Positions 33,401 through 50,087 of a DNA stretch of 64,000 nucleotides are shown one piece after another. The stretch is from Mantamonas sphyraenae STR306 (taxonomy: Eukaryota; Protista; CRuMs): NCBI GenBank assembly GCA_026936335.1, contig JAPMXV010000053.1, positions 1 through 64,000 of the forward strand, written 5' to 3'. How positions within the stretch are numbered: position 1 is the stretch's first letter; each line of letters opens with the position of its first letter. The notes below the pieces were generated by a model. It was not told the origin of the DNA and ran no database searches. It was given only the letters and a program-made list of their open reading frames with translations. Position numbers and translations under genes: made by a program.

Positions 33401-35675
33401 CTCGCTACTTGCGCTCACAAGCACGGCAAGCGTGCCTGGAGACCCGTCGGACGATGCAGACGGCCCCTACGGATCCGAAGCTGGCCCCAGCGCATCCCGC
33501 TCCGCGGCCACGTCCTCGCGCAGGCGCACAGGTGTTGGTATGACCCCTTCCGTGTCTGGTGCCTCGCGCAGTGATGAGGAGGACCTGGAAGAGATGATTC
33601 TGGATGAGGAGGAACATCAGGAAGAGGAGGGCGACCTGCTCTACGACGACTACGAGCTGTACACATCCACACGCAAAAAGATCCAGATCCAGCTGCTGCA
33701 CATGCTTATTCGCGATCGCAAGGCCAAGTTCAACGTCCTGTTTGAAGAGACTATGGACAGCAAACGAGGCGACCTCGCAAAGATTGCCGAGCGCAACCAC
33801 CGCATCCGCAAGATCATGGATGACCTGGGATGGAATGAGCCCATCAAGCAGTTTGAATTGCAGCCGGAGGAGATTCCAGACTCGGTCCTCACAGTGCAGC
33901 CGTGGGAGGTAAATGCGCAGGGCGACAAGTCGCGCGCGCAAATGGAAGAGGAGCGCCGCAAGCGCGAGGCCGAGAACGCCAAGGAAGAGAAGGACGACGC
34001 AGGGGACCGTGGCCTGCGCATGATGATGGGTGGACGCCTGGACGCCCAAGGCGACGACACGGCTCTGGAAGACGAGTTGGTCAGGCCCGACTGGATGAAC
34101 AAGCCGGTCGAGGAGATGAGCGACGAGGAGAAGCAACTCGTGAAGGAGTTCAAGGAGAAAGAGGCAGCCATTCTGTTGGAGAGGGAGAAACGGCGCAAGG
34201 CGCACGAAACGGAGTTGCGCAAGCTGCAAGCGTCGATCGAAGATGTGTGCGGGCAGTTTGATGCTCGCCTGCACCAGCTGTTCCTGCTCAAGATTGACAC
34301 AGACCAGAGCATCTATGAGCTGGAGTTTAAGATCATCAAGTTGTCGCAGGCGCTGCTTGCGGAAGAGAACTTCCAGGTGCGCACAAAGGAGCTGGTGACC
34401 AAGATCACGGAGCTGCGAGACAGGCGCAACTCGCTCCTGGCGCGCAAGAACGAGTTCCAGCGCGAGGTGGAGCGGTACGAAAAGAACTTTGCGGAACTCA
34501 AGGCAAACGACGCCAACCTGAACAGCTCGTTCAAGCGCGACTTTGCCGATCAAGGTGAAATGGTGGACGTGTTGTACAGGTTGTACCGGCGCAAGCCGAA
34601 GAGCAACAAACACCAGGCAAACCTGGAGGAGATTCAGCAGGCGGCGAACGGAGCGGACGATCCGTTCGCATACGTCGACGCCGAGGAGCACCTCGCGCGC
34701 TTGGATATCCCAGATCCTACGGCCATCGACCGACCAGACGGCATCGAAGACAGCGTGTGGGAGCGGCTGATGCAGGCGCGCATTGCTCGACTGGACAGCG
34801 AACAGGAGCTGCGTCTGCACGAGCAGGAATTGGACCAGATGCACGCGTACTTGGACCGGCTGGAAAACGAGGACCAGGAACTGCAGCGAGAGATGGAAGC
34901 GGTGCTGCGACAAACGGCAGACTTTGAGACGGAAAAGATGCGCGAGCGTCTGAACCTGGACGTGCTGCTGAAGTTGAAGCAGGGCCAGGTGGAAGTGGGC
35001 CAGAACGTGGTCACGACCGACTACACTGACAGCGTGTACATCCCCGTGGGTCTCGTGCGCAACTTGAACGACAAAATCATCGATCTGGGCACCCTGCGTG
35101 TCAAAGCCATGCAGCAGAACATGAAGATCCGCAAGCAGATCCACGACGTGGAGTGGGAAAACCAGTTCCTGGACCTGAAGGCGGAGGAGCTGATGGCCAA
35201 GATCTCGGACATCCAGCTGCTGCGTGTGACTAAGCAGCTGCAAAGCCTGATCAAAGGTGGCGACGAGGCAAGCCAGGACGCAGAGGTGAAGAACCTCGAA
35301 AAGCGCTCGGAACACGCTGCACGCTCGCACGACCACAAGGTGAAGGACAAGAAGCGAGCGTTGAAGAGGATGATGCGCCTGATCGAAGAGAAGAACATGG
35401 AGAACCAAAGGCTCGATGAACAGCTGGCTCAGCTGGACGTTGACGTGAACGAGCGCCAGCAGCTGGTGGAAATCCAGGAGATGCACGGCAAGGGCAGCAC
35501 GAGCAAGACAAGCGAGACTCGTATGAAGGAAATCTCGCAGATGCGCTCGCTGAAGGAGATTGCCAAGGCGCAGAAGGAGGAGATTGCCTTTCTCAAGAGC
35601 GAACTCAGTCGCCTGCGGCAAAAGACCTTTCCGTCGTTCCAGGTGGCCCGCAAGCGCAACGACTTTGTCGGATGA
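30464..35675 (+). CDS. CFAP43: Cilia- and flagella-associated protein 43 (WDR96); join(30464..30709,31092..35675)
   Basis: N-terminal WD40 propellers, long coiled coils, LKLKQGQVEV, LLRVTKQLQ and terminal LRQKTFPSF. Confidence 0.88.
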
Positions 35676-35729: not shown

Positions 35730-37965
35730 TCATTCGTCCCGTGAAGGCGCTCGGCTGCTCCGCTTTTTGAGCAGGACGTCGTTCACCTGGGCCACTAGGG
35801 CCTTGTAGGTGTCGTGAAAGAGAAGGATAGGGCCTCGGCGACGATTGACCTCGACCAGGTACATGTCGCCCTGCATGACCTCGAAAATCTGCACGATAAA
35901 CACCACGTTTTCGACACCACCGACGACACACTTGAGCTGCTGGTGCGGACGAGTGGCGTAGGGAATACTGAGCGAATCGAGGGCCTCTTGCAGACGCTGC
36001 TGCAGCTTGTCGCATGGGGTTGCGCTGAGGAAACAAGTGCGGCGCTTGACGTTGTCGTTGCCGCGGACCACCATACCGGTGACATTCTGGGAGGTGAGCA
36101 TGTTGAGGAGGTCAAACGCGTTGACAGAGTACGGATGTGGCTCGTCAGTGCCGTCGTCGTCGCTGTCGTCGTCTGAGCTGTCGTCGTCGTTCTTGCCGAG
36201 CTCTTTCTGCACAACCTCGCGGCTGAGGCGGCGGCTGTGCACACGATTTCTCTCCAAGAAGTTGTTGACATGGTCTTTTGCGCTAGGAGATGGCAGGGAA
36301 TCCTCGTTGTTGAGAGCCAACTCGTTGCTACCAGCCGATGACTCGCGTCGATTCTGCTGTTGGAAGATGTTGCCAGCGCTGTATCGACGTCCTTTTGCTT
36401 TGATGGAGGCCAGCGAGGGCGGTGAGAGAGCAGAAAAGAAGCCACCGCCACCACTAGAGGCACCGCTTGCTGTGGAACTTGCGCTGGCTGTGCTGCCGCT
36501 GCCGCTGCCGTTGCTGCCTCCGGTGCTGCGGCTGAATCTGCTGGATGCGCTATTGCTGTTGCGGCTGCTGCTTCCGTCACCAGCTGATCTGACCACGTCG
36601 ACCGTGAGGTCTGAAAACTTTGAGGAAGAGCGCACGGCCTCGGATGCGCTGCTCGTCAGATCGGAGACGTCTGCGCGCGGTGGACCGTCGGTTGATTTTG
36701 AGCTTCGGTTCCTGGCTACTAGGTGCGTGTCAGAAGCCTCATCCTCGCCGCTGGAATTGCCCTCGTCTGTGTCATCCAGAGAAGAGGTGTTCAAAGTGAC
36801 AGAGATGTTTGCGATGTCGTCGTGGTCGCTTTCAGAGTCACCGCCACCAAGTTGGTCGTCGTCCTCGTCTTTGTCGTCGCCGGTGACCAACAGGTTGCAA
36901 CGGGTGTTTAGGGTGGAATTCTGGATACTGTTTGTGTCATCGTTGTCGTCGCCATCAGCAAAGCCCTCCATGAACCATTCGCTTTCGAAGAGATCGTACA
37001 CGGACCAGCGATGTGCCGGGTTGAGGGTGAGGAGGCCATCGACGACCTCGCGTGCGTCATCCGAGATATACTTGGGAAAGCGCATGGTACGCGTGGTGAT
37101 TCGGCGGATTAGCTGCGCCTCATTGTCGTCCATGAAGGGCAGAAAGCCACACAGAAAAACAAAAAGGATGATGCCACAGCTCCACATATCTGCGCTCTCG
37201 CCGTCGTATTTCCCCACAGTGAGCACCTCGGGGGCGGCGTAGTGGATTGTGCCACACATGGTGGACATGAGCAGAGTTTGCCCTTCCGCGTCCATGGCCT
37301 CCTTGCTGAAGCCAAAGTCGCTGATTTTCAGGTTCTGGTTCGTCGGGACGCACAGGTGATTCAGTTGCACACTTGTGTCAGGACGATGCAGACACATTCA
37401 ACGCATAGCATCACAACGCCAAGTCAAAGCGGCAGTGCACTGGCTGTGTGTGGGGGGTGGAATGGGGCACAAACACAGAATGGTTACACTGAAAGTCGCC
37501 GACTTTGCTTCGAGGCCGCGGAGGCCAACTTACGTCCTTCTCGTCCAGGAGCAGATTCTCAGGCTTGAGGTCACGATGCACAAAGCCCTGTTGGTGAAGG
37601 TAGTGGACGCCTCGGATGAGCTGCTGAAAGAAGTGGCGAGCGGTGTCCTCGGGGAAACGGCGCACATCGACAATTCGGTCAAAAAGCTCGCCACCCGTGC
37701 AGAGCTCCATGACTATGTACATGTGGGAGCGTGTGTCGATGAGTTCGTAGAATTGGACAAAGTGTTTGTTGTTGAACTGGTGCATTATGTCAACTTCTTG
37801 CCGGATGGCCTTTTCAAGGGAAGGGTCACGCAACCTGCGCTTGGCGACGACCTTGATGGCGTACACGTCTGAGGGAGATCCGATGCGATGAGCATGCTTG
37901 ACCACTCCCCAGGTACCCTCTCCGATGGTACGACCAAGCACATACTCGCCTATCTGCTTGGGCAT
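35730..37965 (-). CDS. SNF1-related CIPK-like Ser/Thr kinase with a NAF motif and a long acidic/Ser linker; complement(join(35730..37334,37534..37965))
   Basis: GEGTWG, AIK, HRDLKPEN|NLKISDFG, CGTIHYAAPE, then VNAFDLLNM and a KA1-like C-terminal domain. Confidence 0.88.
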
Positions 37966-38010
37966 GCGGCGGAAAACAAGTCTGCGCCAGCTGGGGCAAC
38001 GACGCCCGCA

Positions 38011-41000
38011 ATGTCCACTGCAGCCGAGACCGCAGCAACACAAGCGACAGCGAGCAGTAGCAACAGCGTCGACACGAGCAGTGTGGATAGTGTCACGCAA
38101 CACATGATTTCCCTGTGCAGCGGAGTCGTCGAAAAGCCGTACTCGATTGCCGACGAAGCTGCCCGGCTCACTCTCACCGTACGAGGCGAGTGCAGCCAGC
38201 ACGAGCAGCAACTGGATCCGAACGAAGAGAAACTCAAGCATCTCGTGGACGTGTTTGTGGACAATGATCTGGACACAGGTGTGCGCGTGGTGAGTGGTTC
38301 GAGTGTTTGTTTCAAGCGCCCATCCTTCGCCCTCGGCAATGTCCACGTGCCTCTTTCCGGTCGCAGCTTTTCCGCTGCCAGGTCTGTGCACGGGGACTCA
38401 GCTGTGGCCATGTGTCTCTCCCTGGATTGCCGACACTATATAGTGCACGGTCAAGTACATTGCAATTGCGCGTGATGGCATGCACTGACACATACGCCGA
38501 ACACGTTGCCTGGCCTCCGCCGCAATTGTGTACGCCGCGAAAAGACGGCCTCCGTGTTTCTGCGACACTACTTTGTGCACGAGTGGAAACACTACCGAGT
38601 GGAAATCCACCAGCACATGCTCACCGTGGTCATCCCCAAGCTCGAGGAGCTCCTGGACAACCAAGACACCCTGCTTCGCCGCGCAGCCGCTGGCCTGATC
38701 GGCCGAGTCCTCGTCGCCGTCGGCGCCAGCCACGCACACACAGAGATCATGCATTTTACCCAATCACTGCAAACGCGTGCAGAAGACCTCGCTTGGATTG
38801 ATGGCGTCACCTATATGCTCACAGACGTGAGTTTTTCACAGCGCTCTGCTGCGCGAGTCTCGTTCTCGGCCACATACTCACACCACCTGGATCTCGCATG
38901 GTTCGCTGTGCACAGCTATGCGACGAGTCGGACGAGTCGTTGCAGCAGTACTTTGATCAGAACGCAGCAAGCACATTCCAAAATCTTCTGGCCGAGCCCA
39001 TCTTTTCGCTGTTGGATCACGACAATCTGAGTATTCGCCTCAACGCTGTGCGCTGTCTCAACGGCGTGCTTGCCAGCGTCGTTGCGTTTGATTCTCACAT
39101 TTTCAACACCGCACGTACGAAGCTGGCCAAGCTGTTCCGTGTGCTGGATGCACAAGGCGAGGAGGTGAATCCCAGTGCCCTGCTGGAAGGGGCCGTCCTC
39201 AGCATCCCCGACGATTGGCACACAGACGAGACCAATCACGATCTCATCTCCTCCATTTGCCTCATGAGTGCGGCCCTGCTCGCTGTGGGTGACCCCCACG
39301 ACGAGGCCTGGTCCGAGGTGCACAAGCGCATTCTTCTGTTTGCCGGCACCGTGTACTGCAACAACTCAAACGTGTTTGTCAAGAGTGAAGCGGGCGAGGT
39401 CTTGCTCGACTTTTTTGCCAACCTGCCCTATGGCCCCGTGTTTTTCCCGTTCCTCTCTGCCATCATGGAAAACACCAAGCCCGGCGGCGTGGGCGACCTG
39501 ACCACAATGCGTGCCATGGAAGGCCCCGCCTCCATCGCCCTTACCGACAGCATAGAGTCGGTGAGCAACTCTGCGAATCAGCCAAGCAGCAGCGGACACA
39601 GCAGTGGAGGTGCCGGTGCACAGGATATCGACGCAGACGTCGAGATGTCCTCGTCCTCGTCCTCGTCTTCCTCGTCCTCTTCCACGAGTCGAGAGGATGG
39701 CGAGGCTGACGGTGCAGCAACCCTTCTCACTGTCCCCGCAGAGACTGTTCTGGAGTACATCCTGCCGCATCTCAACGTGTACGAAATGATCGCGTTGGGC
39801 AACACATGCTCAAGCATGCGCTCAGTGTGCTCGCGCCCCATGGCCTGGAAAGAGCAGTTTGAGCGCACGTTTGGACCCGTGAACGATGAGCTACTGCACT
39901 ACAAAGCAGGCCACGACTGGAGGCGCCAATTTGTGCTGGCCGCCTCCAACTCGGACCACACGCAGTTTGGCGTGCGCCCGCTGTCCGCAGGATCCATGGC
40001 CATCCTGTTCAACCTCAGTGACGCACTCGTGATGAGCGGTAGTTTGGAATCGCTCAGCATGGAAGGTTTCATGCAGCTGGTCAAAGCCATCAACAGCAAA
40101 ATTACCAAGTACCTTGTGTACGACGAGAAAGAGACTCCCGAGGAGGAGCGGCTCACATGGCAAGAACGGTGCATTGGCCCATGCGTGATTGCTTCCATGC
40201 CGCGCGTGCTGGAAGTCGTGCTCATGCGCAGCCCTCCTGCGCGTGCCCGCTTCCACAACCTTTACCTACCCGCCCTCATGGACGCATTCACCGACATGGA
40301 GCAGCCGGTTGCACTCATGGAAGCCAAGATGACGGCCATTGCGCAGTTGATGCAGGTGCTGAATCCCAACGACTACGTGAAGCTCGAAATGGTGGACTTT
40401 CCCGCACAGTGGGTCCAGGCTGCCGTCAAGCACATGGAGGAGTGGATGGAGATGGGTGGCTCGCCTCGTCACTTGCGCGTCGCCATGGAGTCCATTTTCA
40501 CGGCTGTGCCCCACATGGGAATGTTCCTGTACTCGACCGACTCCATCGGTTTGCTCGAACAATACTTCGTGTCTCTGGTCGTCGACGACGACGTGAGCAA
40601 GGCCGAACTCGCGTGCTTGTCGTTGAAAGCCATGACGGAAGCCGATACGGTGACGGGAAGCAACCCTGTGGTCACGACGATGATGCAGATGCTGGCAAGC
40701 CTGAGCAGTGGCGGCGTGCAGTCCATGTCGAACCAAACCAAGCGAATTGTGAGCCTATACTTGGAGGCCCTCACCCCTGTCGTGAGTGATTCACTGCTGG
40801 AAGAGTTTGGGGTGGACATGCTCAAGGTGTTGGCCAACTTGGTGGTGAACATTGAGGTGCAAACCAGCACGGAGGTGCTGGATGACGATTGGACGCCAGA
40901 GCACATCAAGGTGCCCGATTTGACCAATGTGGTGTTTACACTCACCGACGAGGAGGATCCAGAGGACATGCTGCTGCCCGAGCAGCTTTCGGATCACAAT

Positions 41001-42233
41001 GACCTGCTGGGCATGCTGTTGGACTGCATGTATGCGTTGCTCCAGTCCATGGTGCGTGCTACGGCCGAGGAAATGCTGGACCCGCAGGTGTTTGAACCGT
41101 CGCAGTACATGGATGTAGACAAGGTGATGGACGTGGTGGAGAGGGCGTTGGACTCGAAGGAGGAGAGCGTGGTGCAATCTGCGCTGGAGATGCTGGGCAC
41201 CATGGGCAAGTTCTTTCCGGCTGTTGTGCAGCCACACGCAGACAAGTACTTGCTCAAGGTGCTCCGCACAGTGGTACTGTCCACCAACCCCATGCTGGTG
41301 TCCAACTCGGTGTGGGTGCTCGCCGAATGGTACAACCGCAGCTCGCTGGGGAGCGCGCCGCAACTGGCCAACCACTTGAACAATGTCATCCGCGCGTCCC
41401 TGTATCTCCTTACGACCCCGATGGGCATCATGCATCGCGTGTCCAACAATCTGACAATGCTCCTGGGCGTGCTGATGTTGAACAACGCAGATCAGGTTCC
41501 GCAACAGGCTTCCGTGACTCGTTTCCTGGCGGTGCGCTGCACCTTCCTGTGCGCTGTCTCGTCATCGGCGGTGGGCGATGCAGAAATGCGCAGCTGCATG
41601 AAGGGCACCTTCTCGGCAATCGCGCACAACCCGCACTTTTATCTGGCGATGCCGCCCGGGATGCAGCACAAACTGTTTGAAGAGTTTGCCTTTGCGATGA
41701 TGGACTTTATGGACGCCACAGTGAACGGTGTTGTGACGCCACCAGAGATCGAAGGCGAGCTTGTGCACATGTGCAGCATGCTGAACGCGCTGCGCGCTCA
41801 GCAGGCGTCCAACGTGGACGCCCACGCATACGAGATTATTTTGCAGATGCTGCTGGAAACACTGCCTCTGGACACTGCCATCATCAACACACAAGGCTTC
41901 ACGCCTGCATATCTCAAACAGGTCGTGTCGAACACTGAGGCCTTTGCAGAAGGAGACGAAGGTTTGGATTCGTGGCCGGATATGCAGCAGCTCATGGCAG
42001 AATTTGGTGAGGCCCTCAATAATGATCATTATCCTGGGATGCCTGGGATGCCTGGGATGCCTGGAATGCCTCCACAGATGGGATTCCCGGCGTGGAATCA
42101 AGATCTGTCGCAAGAGTCGCAATTTAACAACCCGGCATTGGGAGCAACCGACCAAGACGACGCCGAGCTGTACGGAGATAGTGAAGATGAGGAAGATGAA
42201 GAGGAAGAGGAGGAAGAGTCTGCGTGGGATTGA
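38011..42233 (+). CDS. Divergent transportin-1/karyopherin-beta2-like HEAT protein with an inserted F-box; join(38011..38289,38545..38826,38916..42233)
   Basis: Colinear resemblance to transportin HEAT repeats: DGVTYMLTD|LCDES, LLDHDNLSIRLNAVRCLN, VRPLSAGSMAIL, VVQSALEMLG, VSNSVWVLAE, NNLTMLLGVL. F-box LLTVPAETVLEYILPHL..LGNTCSSMRSVC..W. Confidence 0.75.
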
Positions 42234-42289: not shown

Positions 42290-44694
42290 ATGGACCAGGT
42301 GAGTGTGTCTTGCACAAGAAAGGGAACATGGGTGCGGTAGCATGCTTTGGTGGCGCTGACACAAACTGGTGGTGTTCAGGACTCACTGCTGCAGTATGCG
42401 CTCACAAAGCTGCTGGGCAGGTTCCTGAACAATGAGTTGGAACCCGGCCAGTTGAGTGTGCAGATGGCTGACGGCACCGTCCACATGCGAGATCTCGATC
42501 TAAACACCAGTGTAAGTGGAACCATTGTCGGTACAGTGTGTGAAAGTGAGCGCATAAGTAAGAAAGGGCGTGCAAAAGGCAGGCCCATTTTGCTGACTGG
42601 GTTTTTGGCAATCCTTCCGTCCACGAATACGCAGGTTTGGAACGAAATGATGGCGCGACAGCCTGTTCATCTGCTGTGGGGCTACTTTGGAAGCGTGAGA
42701 GCACACATCCCGTGGCGCAGCCTAGACTCGGAGAGCTGTCGCGTAGAGATTGAAGGTGCTCACTTCCACGTGGCCGTGGAACAAACCCACCCGGATGGCA
42801 ATCAGACCTCGTCCAAGGAGTACGGTAAGTGAACGAGAGCGAAACGTACAAAGAGTGTGCACACTTTCGCGAGCTTTGTGATAGGGCGTGTCTGCACCCA
42901 GTGGTGCGTGCGGTGGCTAACCCGTCGGCGTTGCTCTCCGTTGCGTGTCCTGTGCAGTGAAAGCGATTCTGGAGACGACACTGCAGGACCAAGGTCAGTA
43001 CGAGCTAGACAGGGAACAAGAAGAGTCACCCATGGATGAGGAGTCACCCTTTGCGTTTGGAGACGACGACGAAGACGTGGACGCTGAGGCGGAAGGACAG
43101 GCACGACGAACAAACAGGGCACGAGTACGAGCCAAGCACGGGGCAGGAGCCGTGGAGACACTCATGCAGGCGCTGGAGCAGGCGGTGTACAAAGCGGAGT
43201 TGCATCTGAAGGACGTGACGGTGCAGGTGGAGGTGCAGGACGGAAACGAAACGCACTACCTCGCCGTCCACCTGGACGAGCTCCATCTGCACGATAAGAC
43301 GGGAGGAGGAGGAAGCAGTGTTACCAACGGCGGTGGTACACGTGGAGTGTCATATGGCCTTGGAAGTGCAGTTTTGCGCAAGGACGTCCGCTTTCGCGGC
43401 CTCAGCGTACACACCGCAAACTCCGCCGTCGAGGGGGTACAGAAGGCACAAAGCAGTGCAAAGGATCCAACCATTCTGGAAGATGTCTTTGGCAGCCAAG
43501 GCGACGAGGAAAACGTGCAGGTGTTCACAGAGGCGACGGGAGAAGACTCGGATGACGACGAGTCTTTGGAATCGTACGACGACGACGACGACGATGAGGA
43601 GGTGTTTGAGGACGCGACGGATGACGTGATCTGGGCCAATCTGCCGAGTAGCACAAAGAAACGGTGGTCGTGCGTGTCGCGGGGCACGATGGTGCTGGCG
43701 ACGGATCCAAGCGTGGAGGAGCTGATTTCGCTCAAGATCCGACGCCCTGGGGTGCAGTCGTTCACGATCCCGTTTGTGGAAGCAGATGCGTCGCTGGATA
43801 GTCTGTTTGCCATGGTGACTGCGAACGAAGCAAAGCGCCTGGGGGCTATTCTGGCGCTGATCGGACAAGCCATTCGGGACAAGCAGGCCACGGTGCAGTG
43901 GCACGACCAGGAAGGAGACGGAAATGGCGTTTCCGGCGCAGCAGACGTGGTCGTGTCTAGCCGCAAACCAATCCACACACCGACGAAGGAGCAGCGCAGC
44001 AACGAGGCGAGCTCGTCGCCTGCCCGCGAGGACGTGCTCGGAGAAGGCGTGGTCAGCAGTCGTATGCTGGGTTCGAGCATGATTTCCATTGCCGGGTTGG
44101 GACCCATGGGCGGTGGAGAGAACACGACAGAACGCAGGCAACAGGCGGGAGGGAGCGACGAAGGCGGAGTGCCAGGTGCTTCCCAGGTGTTGCACTCGAT
44201 AACTGTGCGTGCAGCAACGATGATGGTGTTGCTTGTGAGCGACAGCGTTGGAGCAAGCGAGAAGGAGGAAGAGTACAGCGAGGCGCTGGAAGCCCGAGCT
44301 GCACGCAACCGAGAGCGTACATTGGCATGGGGTGCGCTCTTGGACCGCGGCATTGACCAGACGGGGGAAACACATGAGTTTTTTGCGTGCCACACGTTTG
44401 CTCTTCATCTACGGCGGCTGTTTGTGAAAGCGGTGAACTTGGCTGGGCAGGATCGGATGCAAGTGCGCGTTCAGGACGCATGGATGGATGAGTATGTGTA
44501 TACGGATGCATACGGAGCCGATGCTGCCGACGGGCGCTGGGAGGGGGACAGTGCATACCTGAAGCAGAGCATCTTTCGATTCGGCAAGCTGGATGTCGAG
44601 AAACCGGCTGGCGAGGACGATTTGGATGCTGAGCTGGACGTGCTTACGGGTAGTTTGGGTAGCGCTACATATGTGAGATCGGGGGAGAATCAAC

Positions 44695-44727
<33 letters not shown>

Positions 44728-47700
44728 GTTCGGCCCAAAACCTGATGATGAACTTTGTGAGCGAGCATTCAAACAGCGGTTCAGGGAACCGCGTGAGGAA
44801 CACCAACACGAAACTTGGTGTTCAGCTTGCACCTGTGCTGTTTTTCTTTGACGGGCGATCGATTGAACGGCTCCAGCCGTTCCTGGGTCCCGGCCAGGGC
44901 GATGTGTTGAGCAACGTGCAAACAGAACTCGTTGGCGGGCAGCCTGAGAGCTCTCCAGGTGGGTCTCGAAGCAGCAGCCAGGGCGCAAAGATGGAGACGA
45001 CAGAGGATGGCGGGATAACTCTGGAGCTCGAGTCGGAGAGCGAAAGCGACTCGGCGATGTTCACCCCTGTGGGTGGTGAGAAGGAGGCTCGGCATGTATC
45101 TTTCCACATGAGTCAGATGGACATCCTACAGGACCTTGAGGAACGAAGCCAGGCCGCGGAACGAGCAGAGGCCCAGGCTGAAAAACAGCGCGGAAGCGCC
45201 GCAGGGCGTTCGCGGCGTCGTGTGTACAAACGGCTTACGTCGATGCAAGTACAGTGCGCAAAGGTCCAATTTGTCATGCGTGTGGCGTTGAAACCGCAGA
45301 TGAGGTACCGGAGCCATGATATGGCCATGGCAGTTGTTATGAACGAAACGCGTGCGCGAACTCAGTGGACGGAAGCACAGCTTGTGAAGCTGCACTGGGA
45401 TGTCGTCGTCGACACCATGGGCATGTACCTGTTGCAAGGGTCTGGCGTGGCGCAGGAACGCAAGACGCCGTTCCTGAATGCCCAAGGGATGTACGGTGGC
45501 GATGGACGCTGGAACGAGCCCGAGTTTGCCCTGGATTTGGTGTTTGACCACGATGCTGTGGCGCGGCAAAAGCAAAGCGGGGACGACAGGACAGTACACA
45601 TTCGCACTGGGCAGAATCAAAGCAGCAGCAGCAGCAGCAGCGGCGGCAACAACAACAAAAGTGGTCGCGGTGGTGGAGATGGAGACGTACTGGAGTCGGA
45701 CTCGGACAGCGAGCTGTGGGAGGAAGAGAGCGAGGAGAGCGAGGAGAGCGATGGAGACAGTGTGGAGGACAGTGGCAGCGTCAAAAGGACTCGGCGCACG
45801 GGCCGCCGGTTCGGTGAGCAGCCGATCACACACAACGCGCTTCTGGAAGATGAAGAGGGCCGCAACAGCCTGGAGGAACTTGTGGGGAGGTGCATGGGAC
45901 ATTCAGACTATGCAGTCGACGCCACGTTGCCACGCGTGGACATTGACCTGAACAAGCGCGAATACGACGCGCTGATGGTGTTGATCGACCTTTTGTCGTA
46001 CACACAGAGCGAAATCAACAAGCGCAAGCTGAGCGCAGAGTTTGAGCCTGTGGAAAGCGAAGCGGGAGTGGGCAGTGGCATGGAAGCAGGGCAGGAGGTT
46101 GGAACGATGCAAGACATTGTGAAATCGCAGGAGCAGGAAGAGCCGGCGGGTGGAATGCGGCTGTGGGAGCAACGAGAAGAGCTGTCGAGCGGTACGAGCC
46201 GCGGGAGCGAGGAATGGGACGATGGGGAACAAAGCGAGGATGAACTGCAAGGGCTGAGCGCAGCGATGGGATCCGCGATGGCAGGCAGCATGCACAGGGT
46301 GGATGCGGAAGGGGAAGGGAAGCGTGCATGGTCACGAGCGTCGTCACGAGCGTCGTCTCGTGCCACGTCACCCACATCGCAAGCCACATCGACTTTCCTA
46401 GACTCGTTGCGCGAGTCGATGGACTTTGGTGCATCTGTGTCCAACTTCAAGCAACAGCACGGCCTGGACGGGGAGGAATTGGAGTGGCAGGAGAGCTTGC
46501 CGAGCATGCTGAGCCTGCGTGTGCACAGCCGGTTGGTTGGCATGCGGTTGGAGGAAACGAAACACTGGAGTCGCGAGCGGCGGCTGAACGGGTATGAGGT
46601 GATGCTGCAGAACGTAGACATGTTCCAGGTGGCACAGTTGCAGCAGCAGGAGTGCAACCACCTGTACATCGAGGCTGAGGAGATCGATTTGATTGAGACC
46701 ATTGACGCGCCTGGAATCGGCCCTGCGCAAACTCTGAGCACGCTGCATATGTGTGTGCCTGAGCACAGCTCACGCGGATTGTCTGTGGCATACATTGTGC
46801 ACACTCCGTTGGCACGCATCAAGGACGTGACGGTGGACATTACCTTTCGCGGTCTGTTGCTGGAACATCACAGTGGCTCCGAGTGGCTGTTCCACTTGAT
46901 CGACTTTATGGTTGCCCCGGACGAGGCGGAGCTGCTGGAAGGGGACGATGACGAGGAGGGGGAGAGTACAGGGGCCGAGGCGGCAGTTGGAGCCGGTGCG
47001 GGCGCAGAAGCGGTGGTGGACGACGAGGACGACGAGGAAGACGAAGACGACGAAGACTCGCGCATTGTGACGACCAAGATTGATGTGCTGTTTGAAAACA
47101 CGTCGATCCAGTACCACCCATACCGGTTCTGGGACGCGTGCACGATTGTGGTGCTGGACCAGTTCCGTGTGACCACGACGCTGGTTCGTTCGGTGCCCAT
47201 TCTAAAGCTGCACTTGTTGGGAACTCGCATCTCCGTGCTGCTCATCGACGACATTGGCGCGTTGACCGAAGTTGAGGAAGGGCAGGAGCGCGTGGGACTA
47301 CGCACGTATTGGGGTGACCATGGCTTTGTGCACATGGCCGACATCGACCTGGCGAACGTGGTGCTCACGCGCACGAAATTGATGGGTCCAACACACCCGG
47401 CGATGACAATTGAGCTTGTGAGCGAGATGAACGTGGACGTGTACTCGTGCGCAGACTCGTTCCAGACGCTGCTGGGTCTGTTTCTGCACTGGTTCAACTC
47501 GCGAGACATCATGCTGAAGTTTCCCGAGGAGTATGTCAGCGCCATGGTGCAGGAGAGCATGCGCGACGACGCAGGCGCTGGAAACGTGGAGCTGCAGGTG
47601 AACCTGGAACAGCTGGATGCTCAACATCGATCTGCGCTGGTGCAAGAGGTGGATGCGTCTGGGATCAACGATCAGCCTGTGAAACGAATCCGAGGGGATG

Positions 47701-50087
47701 CCATGGCCGGCCGAGGCGTGGTTGTGGATGACTACATGCCACAGGCACGTGGCGCGGCTGGAAGAAACAGTCGCAACAAGGACGAGCAGGAAGCCGGAGA
47801 TGACAACATGTCGGTGGTGTCGTTCGATGGAAGTGTTGCATCATCAGGGAACGCCTTGGGCATGATTCTGATCGATGAGTACGACGCAAGAAGTGCATCG
47901 GACACCAGATCGGACAGGCCTTCGGGAGGCCTCTCACCACAAGTCTCCACGCATGCAAGAAACGGCAAGGCGGGCCAGGAGGAAGAATCGTTGATTGATG
48001 TGGACTGGAACTTTTTCGATCGGCGAACTGCGGCCGCACTTGAGGACAAGGCACGAGGTGCGGAAGTGCCACGCGCACAGGCGTCAAGTGACGTCAAGCG
48101 AGGCAAAAGTGTGCTGGTTGGAAAGGAGGGGGCACACTTTGCAGAGGTGGACGCAGCAGGATTTGGCGTGGTGACTGCTGGGCAAGCAGCACCATCTCAG
48201 CGGAAGGGAGCCGGCTCGTATGTGGACACGCAAAGATACTTGTTGTATGAAGATGAGGAACAAGGAGTGTACGTGTTGCTTGACGACGATGTATTGGCGC
48301 AGAGCAGCCGGGCCAAGGGGTCTGCGTCGCACCGTACATCGAGCCGGCGAGCGCGAAAGCGTGCGGCCAAACGTCGCCGACAACGGGCAGCGCGAGCAGC
48401 TCGGCGCAAGAGAGAGCGAGCGATGAGTAGCAGTAGCAGCAGCGGAGGGAGCAGCAGCAGTGGCAGCAGTGGTGGAGGATACTCGAGCGATGAGCTTGCG
48501 CCGGAAAGGTATGTGAACTTTGATCCGGAGAACATGGGATTCGATTTGTGTGCGTTTGTGCGCGAGTATTACATTACCAAGCCACACCCGCTGGAGGAGA
48601 GCAAGACGGATTTGCCCGCACGGTATCCGAACCCAGTGGCGCAGTTCTCGCTGCAGGGAATCAACGTGTCGTGGCGCATGTACGATGGCCTGGATTGGGG
48701 CGAGCGGTCGCAAGTCGGTCTCCAAACCATCGACACAAGTGCAGTTGTGCCGCAGGCACGTGAGCGGCAGGAAGAAGAAGGAGGTGAGGACGACGACGAC
48801 GGAGGCAAGAGAAAGGCGGAAACCGGGGAAGCCGAGTTTGTGACGGTGGACACCGAGGCATCGAGCATCAAGCGCACACGGGACACTGAGAACCACTTGC
48901 GAGTGGACATTGGGAACCTGGGAGTGATGGTGTACGAATTTGAACCTGGGCTGCTGTATGTGTCGCGGCTTGTTGTGACGATGGAGACGCTGTATGTGGA
49001 GGACTGTGTGAGCACATCACACTGGAAGGGGATGGTGGACAACTGGAAGGCAACGGCATGGCCGCGAGACCCCGGTGCGCCGCAGTTCCGCATGGAGATG
49101 GACACGGTGAAACCAAACGGACCGAATGGGAGCAAGGAAACAAGGCTGAAGCTTGCGCTGATGCCGCTGCGCGCACGTGTGGATCAGGACGCGCTGGACT
49201 TGTTGATTCGCAGCGTGACGTTCCCCAGTGCGCCCGTTATTGTGCCGTCTGGGTACCAGGAGAGCGAGGCGTACTTCCAGTTGTTCAAGTTCCGGCAGAT
49301 GCACGTCAAGGTGGACTACAAACCGAAGCATGTGCAGTACAGCCAGCTGCACTCGCAACCGGCCGAGGCCGTCAAGCTGCTCATCCTGGAAGGGGCCGAG
49401 TTTGACCTGGCCCCAATCCATGCCAACGGATTGACGGGCTGGGATGGAGTGCTGGAAGCCATGGTGGACACCTGGGTGCCGCATATCACGTCAACCCAGG
49501 TGTATCAGTACCTGTCGGCTGTGCAGCCGATCCGATCCTTTGTTCGTTTGTCGCAAGGGGTGGCAGACCTGGTTGTACTTCCTGTGCAGCAGTATCGCAA
49601 GGACCAGCGTCTGGTCAAGGGATTGCAGATGGGCACGCGTTCATTTTTGAAGACGGTGACGATGGAGGCCATCAATATCACCAACCAGATGGCTGTGGGT
49701 GCACAGACACTGTTGGAAGGCGTGGATGGCTACCTGGAAGGCTCCAGCGGCGGCGAGGCGAACGAAGCACAGAACTCGTCGTCCAGTTCGTCGCGAAGCA
49801 GGTATGCACGCCAACCTCTGTCGACGAGAGAGGGCATGAATGCAGCGTATGACAGCGTGGCGCGTGGACTGGATGACGCTGCGAGAACAGTGTATTTCGT
49901 GCCGCTGGAACAGTACCGAAAGGAGGGCGTGGGCAGCGCGGTGGGATCTCTGGTGAAGGGCGTGCCTGTGGCAGTGATCAAACCGATGATTGGCGTGTCG
50001 GAGGCTCTGTCCAAGGCGTTGTTGGGCATGCGCAACCACCTGGATCCGGAGCTTCAGTCAGAGGTGGCGGCCAAGTACAAGCGCTGA
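42290..50087 (+). CDS. ATG2: Autophagy-related protein 2; join(42290..42298,42380..42511,42635..42824,42958..50087)
   Basis: Chorein-N (LQYALTKLLGRFL, IPWRSL), CADSFQTL, PLRARVDQDAL, VDYKPK and the ATG_C region (KPMIGVSEALSKALLGMRNHLDP..KYK). Confidence 0.93.

Follow-up and report, generated by a model that had tools for sequence, protein, structure and literature searches.

The locus at positions 38011-42233 of the window, by which we mean the whole stretch of 64,000 nt that was analysed, raises the question of whether the scaffold of a nuclear import receptor has been turned into a substrate receptor of a ubiquitin ligase. The initial annotation described the encoded protein as a homologue of transportin (karyopherin-beta2) with an F-box inserted in the acidic H8 loop. 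We examined the gene model, the F-box, and the two HEAT arches on either side of it.

Gene structure and domain layout

An uninterrupted ORF of 1111 codons was found at 38898-42233 on the forward strand, its frame being open for 3,333 nt, and two upstream exons at 38011-38289 and 38545-38826 join it in frame via GTGAGT...AG introns. One predicted gene with three exons and about 1,290-1,300 codons is the best explanation of this arrangement. Putative exon 1 (38011-38289, +; 93 codons from the ATG at 38011) showed a coding-type GC content by codon position (0.62/0.43/0.66) and no domain match, Pfam giving only noise. It is followed by putative intron 1 (38290-38544, +; GTGAGT...AG), in which the GC content by position is flat (0.59/0.55/0.58); an alternative in-frame acceptor at this intron would place the start of exon 2 at 38584. 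Putative exon 2 (38545-38826, +; 94 codons; GC by position 0.68/0.35/0.72) encodes generic HEAT repeats, and the removal of putative intron 2 (38827-38915, +; 89 nt, GTGAGT...CAG) keeps the frame, joining ...YMLTD to LCDES... at the junction. Direct reading of the sequence confirmed this junction, which had been proposed earlier, and all strings quoted in the initial annotation are present. Exon 1, exon 2, and the ORF were searched separately, as unjoined pieces, in the analyses described below. The start codons of exon 1 and of a divergent kinase gene are 42 bp apart.

The third exon encodes the remainder of an N-terminal HEAT arch (38916-39470, +; ORF aa 7-191), a disordered, Ser-rich, net-acidic linker (39471-39713, +; aa 192-272), the F-box (39714-39878, +; aa 273-327), and a helical extension which includes DWRRQF (39879-39965, +; aa 328-356). 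These are followed by a C-terminal HEAT arch with about 27 helices predicted at low confidence (39966-42020, +; aa 357-1041), inside which lies a transportin-like block (40995-41636, +; aa 700-913), and by a low-complexity tail with the stop codon (42021-42233, +), where PGM repeats precede an acidic run. The tail contains 21 Asp+Glu in 70 aa and was disordered in the AlphaFold2 (AF2) model. The whole protein would begin with an N-terminal HEAT arch (about 380 residues) and continue through an 81-residue linker to the F-box with its helical extension, and from there through a C-terminal HEAT arch of about 650 residues to the acidic tail. The GC content at third codon positions (GC3) was 0.72-0.78 throughout the gene, with the coding pattern running through all parts, and no GT[AG]AGT-type donor was found between 38916 and 40781, a stretch that includes the linker and the F-box. 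As far as the sequence can tell, the F-box segment is probably exonic: it is an in-frame domain with no donor-like site nearby.

The internal F-box and its predicted partner

The initial annotation had recognised an F-box in LLTVPAETVLEYILPHLNVYEMIALGNTCSSMRSVCSRPMAWKEQFERTFG (ORF aa 276-326; 39723-39875 of the window). Both Pfam F-box models remained below their gathering scores, PF12937 (F-box-like) giving 17.3 bits with the whole ORF, 21.4 with the segment alone, and 22.4 in the genome scan against a cut-off of 24.3, and PF00646 giving 13.4 bits against a cut-off of 20.5. In contrast, when 20 F-boxes from this genome, each scoring 43-61 bits to PF12937, were made into an HMM, it matched ORF aa 273-327 at 32.5 bits, while the maximum in 500 shuffles was 6.8. 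When the isolated segment was compared with Pfam, the top three matches were all F-box families. A phmmer search over 1.84e9 representative proteins returned two sole matches, P0001 and P0002, at aa 229-351 and 275-342, one of which, P0001, scores above the cut-offs of both Pfam F-box models and is itself a bona fide F-box protein. Compared in an alignment of 23 sequences, the query kept the invariant residues (P and W) as well as the near-invariant ones (E and L), in the form V-P-A-E...L...W.

An AF2 model of the segment, computed with an alignment, had a pLDDT of 78 overall and of 90-95 over segment residues 11-50. It contained the three helices of an F-box (H12-22, H25-32, and H36-42), a result that leans on the alignment of F-boxes, and the extension after the F-box was predicted as a long helix (model residues 61-82, pLDDT 59-76). 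Almost all of the first 49 Foldseek matches in the PDB were F-box chains, most of them from SKP1 complexes, and FBXO31, Fbw7, FBXO3, Fbx4, and Skp2 were superposed with an rmsd of 1.0-2.1 Å over 44-53 residues (E-values 0.06-1). The internal F-box is genuine, and the claim made for it earlier is borne out by a profile score far beyond chance, the match to P0001, the core residues, and the modelled fold. Since no close copy occurs in the same genome, the nearest F-boxes being merely 27-34% identical, it is not a recent copy.

The genome contains SKP1 (C35), cullins at 6 or more loci, and no fewer than 73 genes with an F-box. Modelling with SKP1 was carried out in ESMFold2 with the last exon of the SKP1 gene (74 aa of a multi-exon gene). 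The co-fold with the F-box reached an ipSAE of 0.57, which falls in the weak band, as compared to 0.02 for the best control; the runs agreed in at least 91% of contacts, and the pLDDT of the partner was at least 68. Of 78 solved complexes, 51 reached the mark used for co-folds, as did 2 of 108 mismatched pairs, and scores of 0.60 or less comprised only 5 of the 78 solved complexes and all 4 passing mismatches of 180. Solved SKP1-F-box complexes remembered by the model may also contribute to the score. The predicted interface on SKP1 consists of helices H5-H8. This modelling weakly supports the F-box as plausibly SKP1-competent.

Relationship of the HEAT arches to transportin

The two arches differed in their similarity to transportin. 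The N-terminal arch was all-helical in its exon 3 part (AF2 model) and looks like generic HEAT. Exon 2 gave sub-threshold Pfam matches to ARM_TBCD_2nd (E 0.001), HEAT_IPO9_c (0.007), and HEAT (0.055), and Pfam HEAT was matched at ORF aa 34-57 (E 8e-4). No Ran-binding IBN_N domain was detected: none turned up when exon 1, exon 2, and the ORF were each compared with Pfam at E ≤ 1, and a genome scan with PF03810 found nine other loci and none at C53:38011-39500. In hhalign against the transportin profile, exon 1 scored at shuffle level, and exon 2, aa 7-195, and aa 350-700, each taken separately, were at or barely above shuffles. Residues 6-91 of the ORF showed a weak colinear match to about residues 155-237 of transportin.

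The C-terminal arch aligned over aa 700-913 to positions 663-858 of the 922 positions of the transportin profile. The probability in hhalign was 81-87% (score 54-55; shuffles 17±3, maximum 30), and HMMER --max gave 34.8 bits with its filters off, a match that was lost under default filters. A genome scan with the transportin alignment likewise missed this locus, which did not pass the first filter of that scan. Homology to transportin is detectable over some 200 residues of the roughly 1,300, at a level found between karyopherin families; for scale, the genome's real transportin scored 38.9 bits (87.5%) against an importin-beta1 profile, close to the values just given. A lineage-matched importin-beta1 profile gave 3.7 bits (0.3% probability) with the ORF, and thus the composition of the lineage does not explain the transportin score. 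Single-sequence comparisons with 14 HEAT/ARM proteins of the genome were less informative: BLASTP gave about 25-27 bits for all without discrimination, hhalign was also non-discriminating, and the genome's own TNPO1, the best match in this panel, was merely slightly best in phmmer. Pfam TPR_SYO1 was matched at aa 674-811 (E 6e-4). An identity as SYO1/HEATR3 was rejected, the score of 20 bits being below the cut-off and weaker than that of the transportin profile, and an identity as TBCD was rejected as well, there being no TFCD_C match.

Wider searches did not place the protein. The AF2 single-sequence model of the ORF was all-helical with about 39 helices, and its low confidence (pLDDT 40.6, pTM 0.28) made it unusable for a fold search of the HEAT part. 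No chain of the PDB was matched by phmmer at E ≤ 10, a word-indexed homologue search with the whole ORF gave nothing at E ≤ 0.001, phmmer over the 1.84e9 representatives gave no match to either HEAT arch and no orthologue, and a search of the genome itself gave no paralogue. In the databases and the genome searched, this is an orphan gene of an unsampled protist lineage, with no orthologues and no paralogues. A EukProt transcriptome of a relative shows 51-63% identity in karyopherins.

Similarity of this kind could also arise from a generic fusion of an F-box with HEAT repeats, without karyopherin ancestry and with the likeness reflecting a shared canonical HEAT consensus, in a lineage where F-boxes have been shuffled onto many scaffolds. 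Several results agree with such a fusion. When the genome's own transportin and its nearest relative were left out of the profile, the score fell to 16.4 bits, near the 12.6-15.4 bits of non-karyopherin HEAT proteins; GCN1 matched the same region of the transportin profile at 28 bits; and the NNAxWAxGE-type motif scored equally in importin-alpha, CRM1, and a DUF4042 HEAT protein. The language-model neighbours of the N-terminal arch, which lacks a detectable IBN_N, were HEAT fragments of TBCD, mTOR, GCN1, and CAND1, and the genome contains other F-box fusions, among them a cytochrome-P450-F-box ORF at C10:144859-147672. However, the importin-beta1 result given above speaks against a mere consensus effect, as do three further comparisons. 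In the reverse search over 133 karyopherins, the top four ranks went to transportins of different eukaryotes (MWU p 2e-5); hhalign gave 2% for three HEAT proteins of the genome that are not karyopherins; and the ten nearest language-model neighbours of the C-terminal arch were all clusters of the importin-beta family (score 0.93). The data supported a greater similarity of the C-terminal arch to transportin than to importin-beta1 or any other HEAT protein in the comparison, and we regard the fusion without karyopherin ancestry as rather unlikely. The earlier suggestion that the HEAT part is closer to transportin than to generic HEAT proteins is supported for aa 700-913, but not for the N-terminal arch or aa 350-700.

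The opposite possibility is a working, Ran-regulated transportin paralogue with the F-box in its H8 loop, in which PY-NLS-type cargo or the state of Ran would be coupled to ubiquitination by SCF. The linker described between the arches is real in composition and in predicted disorder: its 81 residues contain 23 Ser, 12 Asp+Glu, and 3 Lys+Arg (GC3 0.73), no donor-like site occurs in it, and AF2 predicted no secondary structure (pLDDT about 28). If aa 6-91 are equivalent to about residues 155-237 of transportin, the linker begins about 100 residues further on, at the place of the acidic H8 loop in the transportin profile. The C-terminal arch block stops close to the profile's end, and the predicted helices, about 40 plus those of exons 1-2 in a low-confidence AF2 model, come near to 20 repeats. 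The best WNLRK-type window also lies directly after the F-box, with a match inside the shuffle range. No other window of the protein matched WNLRKCSAAALDVL better than FGVRPLSAGSMAIL (ORF aa 357-370), but the score of 17.0 is within the shuffle range (95th percentile 19.9), and a PSSM scan for an H8B-type (WNLRKCSAAALD-type) motif after the F-box gave nothing above shuffles. A longer post-loop motif found its best fit ahead of the linker, at aa 160-195 (marginal, p about 0.02-0.03), which would shift the insert by about one hairpin. The spacing would fit a placement of the F-box in the H8 loop, but the insertion point could not be mapped to this loop.

The three transportin motifs named in the initial annotation match the consensus of a real transportin alignment, but none was individually significant when they were tested one by one by PSSM scan. 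The statement that transportin HEAT motifs follow in order was not confirmed: the third motif (VSNSVWVLAE, aa 801-810) alone is inside the statistically supported alignment, and the first is in a colinear but weak alignment (0.4-8.7 bits). FLSAIMENTK, which had been compared with helix H8A, is at aa 185-194.

As the initial annotation had proposed to check, the genome was searched for a separate canonical transportin, and one is present on contig C13. Loci of importin-4, KAP120, importin-5, exportin-5, and importin-alpha were checked first as candidates. The transportin-1 orthologue at G000:C13:70464-73020 matches human TNPO1 at E 1.1e-89 over residues 226-884 and has its own acidic H8 loop. 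Its presence rules out that the F-box/HEAT gene is the organism's own transportin; the gene is therefore not the orthologue and is at most an old, very diverged paralogue. Together with the post-loop motifs and the failure to detect an IBN_N or Ran-binding region in exons 1-2, this canonical transportin makes a working, Ran-regulated paralogue improbable.

A probable lineage-specific F-box protein with a karyopherin-like scaffold

The reading we favour, and consider somewhat better than an even bet, is a lineage-specific F-box protein with a distant karyopherin-like HEAT scaffold rather than a working transportin. The F-box would most likely dock on the C-terminal helices of SKP1, which would bring the protein into a SKP1-cullin-RBX1 ligase. 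The C-terminal HEAT arch may bind the substrate, with the N-terminal arch possibly acting as a second jaw. Given the faint but specific likeness to transportin and the F-box, we see in the protein a probable new type of substrate receptor for a ubiquitin ligase, not a working import receptor. The C-terminal arch would be a very distant relative of the C-terminal arch of transportin (Kap-beta2), and with such distant kinship the protein may best be seen as an old, fast-evolving karyopherin-like scaffold that gained an F-box; alternatively, an F-box protein may have captured such a scaffold. The stronger form of this origin, proposed earlier, is an ancient transportin paralogue that became an SCF receptor by insertion of an F-box in or next to the inter-arch loop, with the sensing of NLS-like signals or Ran coupled to ubiquitination. 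A real F-box in a HEAT solenoid and a specific, weak transportin likeness agree with a divergent paralogue serving as an SCF receptor, but the homology extends over about 200 residues, and we give this form little chance. That such a protein would link NLS recognition or the state of Ran to ubiquitination is no more than conjecture.

The layout can be compared with those of known proteins. With transportin-1/karyopherin-beta2 (TNPO1, Kap104), the best-scoring family among those tested, it shares a HEAT solenoid of comparable size that is helical throughout, an extended disordered and net-acidic segment separating the N-terminal from the C-terminal arch, and about 200 residues of the C-terminal arch that align in order, near the C-terminus. 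It differs in the lack of a detectable IBN_N/Ran-binding N-terminus, with no significant similarity outside aa 700-913, in the F-box and helical extension (about 85 residues) after the linker, and in its intron positions, which are not common to both. With Skp2, Fbw7, FBXO31, and FBXL17 it shares a three-helix F-box with an LP...W core that is followed by a helical linker and then by a large repeat domain at the C-terminus. Unlike in these classical receptors, the repeat domain is HEAT/karyopherin-like instead of LRR, WD40, or Kelch, the F-box is internal, with about 460 residues (HEAT arch and linker) before it, and the Pfam F-box scores are sub-threshold. ARABIDILLO-type proteins of plants, which have an N-terminal F-box followed by LRRs and then ARM repeats, likewise combine an F-box with alpha-solenoid repeats of the ARM/HEAT clan, but with the F-box at the N-terminus and not internal; no relationship in sequence to the present gene was found. 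The P450-F-box ORF resembles the present gene as a lineage-specific joining of an F-box to an unusual partner domain and has no sequence similarity to it beyond the F-box.

An artefact of the gene model is very improbable. In one version two genes would share a frame, a HEAT protein being followed by a second protein, with F-box and HEAT repeats, that begins at Met250; this ATG is situated 23 codons ahead of the F-box, which would then be N-terminal as is usual. In the other, an in-frame intron free of stop codons would remove part of the linker or F-box. The open frame of 3,333 nt would leave the supposed upstream gene without a stop codon, and the even GC3, the lack of a donor, and the well-formed in-frame F-box also stand against an artefact.

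F-box proteins are defined by what the F-box is attached to. To our knowledge, no F-box protein has been described in which a karyopherin-like HEAT superhelix serves as the receptor domain, or in which the F-box is buried between two HEAT arches; a literature search found no described F-box/HEAT or F-box/karyopherin protein. If the transportin ancestry is false, the gene would be one more case of heavy F-box domain shuffling in an unsampled protist lineage, of interest mainly for annotating the genome. If the protein were an SCF receptor derived from a transportin paralogue, it would directly link the recognition of nuclear-import signals to protein degradation. If the transportin ancestry is true, the scaffold of an import receptor can be re-used to select substrates for ubiquitination, and the gene would provide a natural test case of how the cargo-binding surfaces of karyopherins evolve new uses.

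F-box and ubiquitin-ligase components

The gene at 38011-42233 (+) was annotated initially as a transportin homologue carrying an F-box within its H8 acidic loop. Using the numbering of the ORF at 38898-42233, it encodes an N-terminal HEAT arch (its exon 3 part, aa 7-191), a linker (aa 192-272), the F-box (aa 273-327) and a C-terminal HEAT arch (aa 357-1041). Pfam F-box matches were all sub-threshold (PF12937, 17-22 bits, cut-off 24.3), and the top three Pfam families of the isolated segment were all F-box families. Run exhaustively over 1.84 billion representative proteins, phmmer found two matches, which cover aa 229-351 and aa 275-342; P0001, one of the two proteins, clears both Pfam F-box thresholds. 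An HMM made from the genome's own 20 best F-boxes scored 32.5 bits at aa 273-327, with 500 segment shuffles reaching at most 6.8 bits. Both invariant residues (Pro and Trp) of a 23-sequence F-box alignment are kept in the query, as are the near-invariant Glu and Leu. AF2 run with, and relying on, the F-box alignment gave three short helices (pLDDT >90), then a fourth, and finally a long helical extension. When this model was searched against the PDB with Foldseek, almost all of the first 49 matches were F-box chains, mostly from SKP1 complexes and including FBXO31, Fbw7, FBXO3, Fbx4 and Skp2; the best superpositions had an rmsd of 1-2 Å over 44-53 residues, with weak E-values for so small a domain. 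Together, these results demonstrate that the F-box is real. Since the closest F-boxes within the genome are only 27-34% identical, it is not a recent copy of any of them.

Besides SKP1, which has a paralogue close by, the genome holds at least 73 F-box genes and a minimum of six cullin loci. Because the SKP1 gene is multi-exon, the co-fold with aa 270-365 in ESMFold2 used only the final exon, whose 74 aa comprise the F-box-binding helices H5-H8. The ipSAE was 0.57 (best control, 0.02), with contact agreement among runs of at least 91% and partner pLDDT of at least 68. Among solved complexes, 51 of 78 reached the mark that was applied, as did 2 of 108 mismatched pairs; scores of 0.60 or less came from just 5 of the 78 solved complexes but from all four passing mismatches (of 180), and the value of 0.57 gives weak support. 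Such a pass may also reflect memory of solved complexes. Given the high prior of the motif, SKP1 binding by this F-box is predicted to be likely.

On contig C35 (+), 4.5 kb separate the two SKP1-type genes: the canonical one (38361-38504) has several exons and scores 105 bits to the Skp1 domain, and the other (33786-33926), a diverged paralogue, scores 53 bits and carries an acidic tail rich in Lys and Glu. Unusual F-box partners occur in this genome; for example, in a 938-aa ORF on contig C10 (144859-147672, +), a cytochrome-P450 match at aa 373-477 is joined by an F-box at aa 765-804.

HEAT arches and their relation to transportin

The karyopherin set of the genome is normal, comprising CRM1, CAS, importin-7-like, importin-9, importin-4, KAP120, importin-5, exportin-5, importin-beta1 and, found on contig C13 when a separate canonical transportin was sought, transportin-1 with an acidic H8 loop (E 1.1e-89 to human TNPO1 residues 226-884). 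Because this canonical gene exists, assignment of the HEAT/F-box gene as the transportin orthologue was rejected. The C13 transportin (L022:2279-2518) keeps the acidic loop without about 30 of its profile positions, and its post-loop motif has diverged (MKLSRRRYAGLALEML instead of WNLRKCSAAALDVL). The nearest database relative of the conserved karyopherins is one EukProt transcriptome (transportin 51%, importin-beta1 63% identity), and the next are below 40%; the lineage is very poorly sampled.

With single exons as separate queries, no homologue of the ORF outside the F-box was detected in the databases, including the 1.84 billion proteins searched by phmmer, and no paralogue was found in the genome. 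Single-sequence AF2 of the ORF was all-helical and unreliable (pLDDT 40.6). A profile of 14 transportins (the genome's own and 13 homologues) aligned by hhalign over columns 673-867 of 938 with aa 701-913 (probability 81-87%, score 54-55), compared with 17±3 (maximum 30) for 70 shuffles, 23 for the reversed sequence and ca. 28 (probability 2%) for three HEAT proteins of this genome that are not karyopherins. HMMER with filters off found the same region as one domain (34.8 bits); this match disappears with default filters and, with the genome's transportin and the closest relative of that protein left out of the profile, drops to 16.4 bits. A lineage-matched importin-beta1 profile, constructed in the same way, gave only 3.7 bits (0.3%) on the HEAT/F-box protein. 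Since it gave 38.9 bits (87.5%) on the real transportin, the distance between the HEAT/F-box protein and transportin is about that between transportin and importin-beta1. When aa 690-920 were compared with 14 transportins and 119 importin-beta1s, the top four were transportins from different eukaryotes (17.7-11.3 bits), with medians of 7.5 for transportin vs 2.8 for importin-beta1 (Mann-Whitney p 2e-5, the sequences being related). In a panel of 14 HEAT/ARM proteins from this genome, the own transportin matched best (10.3 bits). As a lead only, the language-model neighbours of aa 355-1010 were ten importin-beta-family clusters, including transportin-1 (score 0.93).

A fusion of an F-box with generic HEAT repeats that have no karyopherin ancestry is a less probable alternative to this distant relationship. 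GCN1 matches the same transportin-profile positions with 28 bits (C18:200469-202703, -; a 2298-codon frame, GCN1-like by TPR_IMB1 and HEAT_EZ), which warns that this region draws canonical HEAT repeats. The N-terminal arch had sub-threshold, generic HEAT matches only in Pfam, and its language-model neighbours were fragments of TBCD, mTOR, GCN1 and CAND1. When exon 1, exon 2, aa 7-195 and aa 350-700 were each aligned to the transportin profile by hhalign, the scores stayed at shuffle level or barely exceeded it. The proposed transportin homology was supported in part, for aa 701-913 and not for the N-terminal arch or aa 350-700. The initial annotation's import-receptor/SCF hybrid, coupled to Ran or NLS recognition, is improbable: its prerequisite, a Ran-binding N-terminus, was looked for and not found, and neither Pfam nor the genome profile scan detected IBN_N in the gene.

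As to the proposed placement of the F-box in the H8 loop, the region aa 6-91, covering the LCDES/KICED motif, aligned weakly to transportin residues ca. 155-237 (profile 0.4 bits; single transportins 8.7 and 3.8 bits), and the linker starts about 100 residues past this anchor, as does the acidic loop in the profile. Greedy hhalign also put the linker on the loop, at near-zero confidence. This spacing fits the placement, but the flank gives no confirmation: FGVRPLSAGSMAIL, the protein's top WNLRKCSAAALDVL-type window, scored inside the shuffle range, and the longer post-loop motif (WNLRK...ENL) fitted best at aa 160-195, just ahead of the linker (p ca. 0.02-0.03, uncorrected), which would move the insert by about one hairpin. 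The insert probably sits between the two HEAT arches, at a position consistent with the H8-H9 region of a transportin-like scaffold, and the mapping is no finer.

Gene model and neighbouring genes

The window belongs to a eukaryotic assembly of 25 Mb in 78 contigs. Reading the DNA directly, we found an uninterrupted frame of 1111 codons (38898-42233, +), with exons 1 and 2 upstream and in frame. Exon 1 (38011-38289, +) is followed directly by a GTGAGT donor; exon 2 (38545-38826, +; alternative start 38584) ends in ...YMLTD before another GTGAGT donor; and a CAG acceptor precedes exon 3, which begins at 38916 (+) with LCDES.... Each exon segment, linker and F-box included, has coding-type GC by codon position (high, low, high), both introns are flat, and no GT[AG]AGT-type donor was found in 38916-40781. 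A three-exon gene is thus predicted, and an artefact of the gene model is very improbable.

A divergently oriented Ser/Thr protein-kinase gene of two exons (35730-37968, -) lies head-to-head with this gene, with the N-lobe in 37411-37968 (-) and the C-lobe and a long Ser/Asp-rich tail in 35733-37397 (-). Because its start codon is only 42 bp from ATG 38011, a further upstream exon is not likely, and the 5' UTRs would be minimal or overlapping. Downstream lies ATG2 (autophagy-related protein 2; 42347-50087, +), with a 2380-codon ORF, a C-terminal ATG2_CAD match (E 2e-132) and a likely N-terminal exon at 42347-42832.

Proposed role of the HEAT/F-box protein

Literature searches brought up no F-box protein whose receptor domain is of HEAT or karyopherin type, and none in which the F-box stands between two HEAT arches; plant F-box/Armadillo proteins are presumably the nearest known architecture. 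We consider it most probable, with moderate confidence, that the HEAT/F-box protein is an SCF substrate receptor. The F-box would dock on SKP1, and the large, distantly transportin-like C-terminal arch would hold the substrate, perhaps together with the N-terminal arch.
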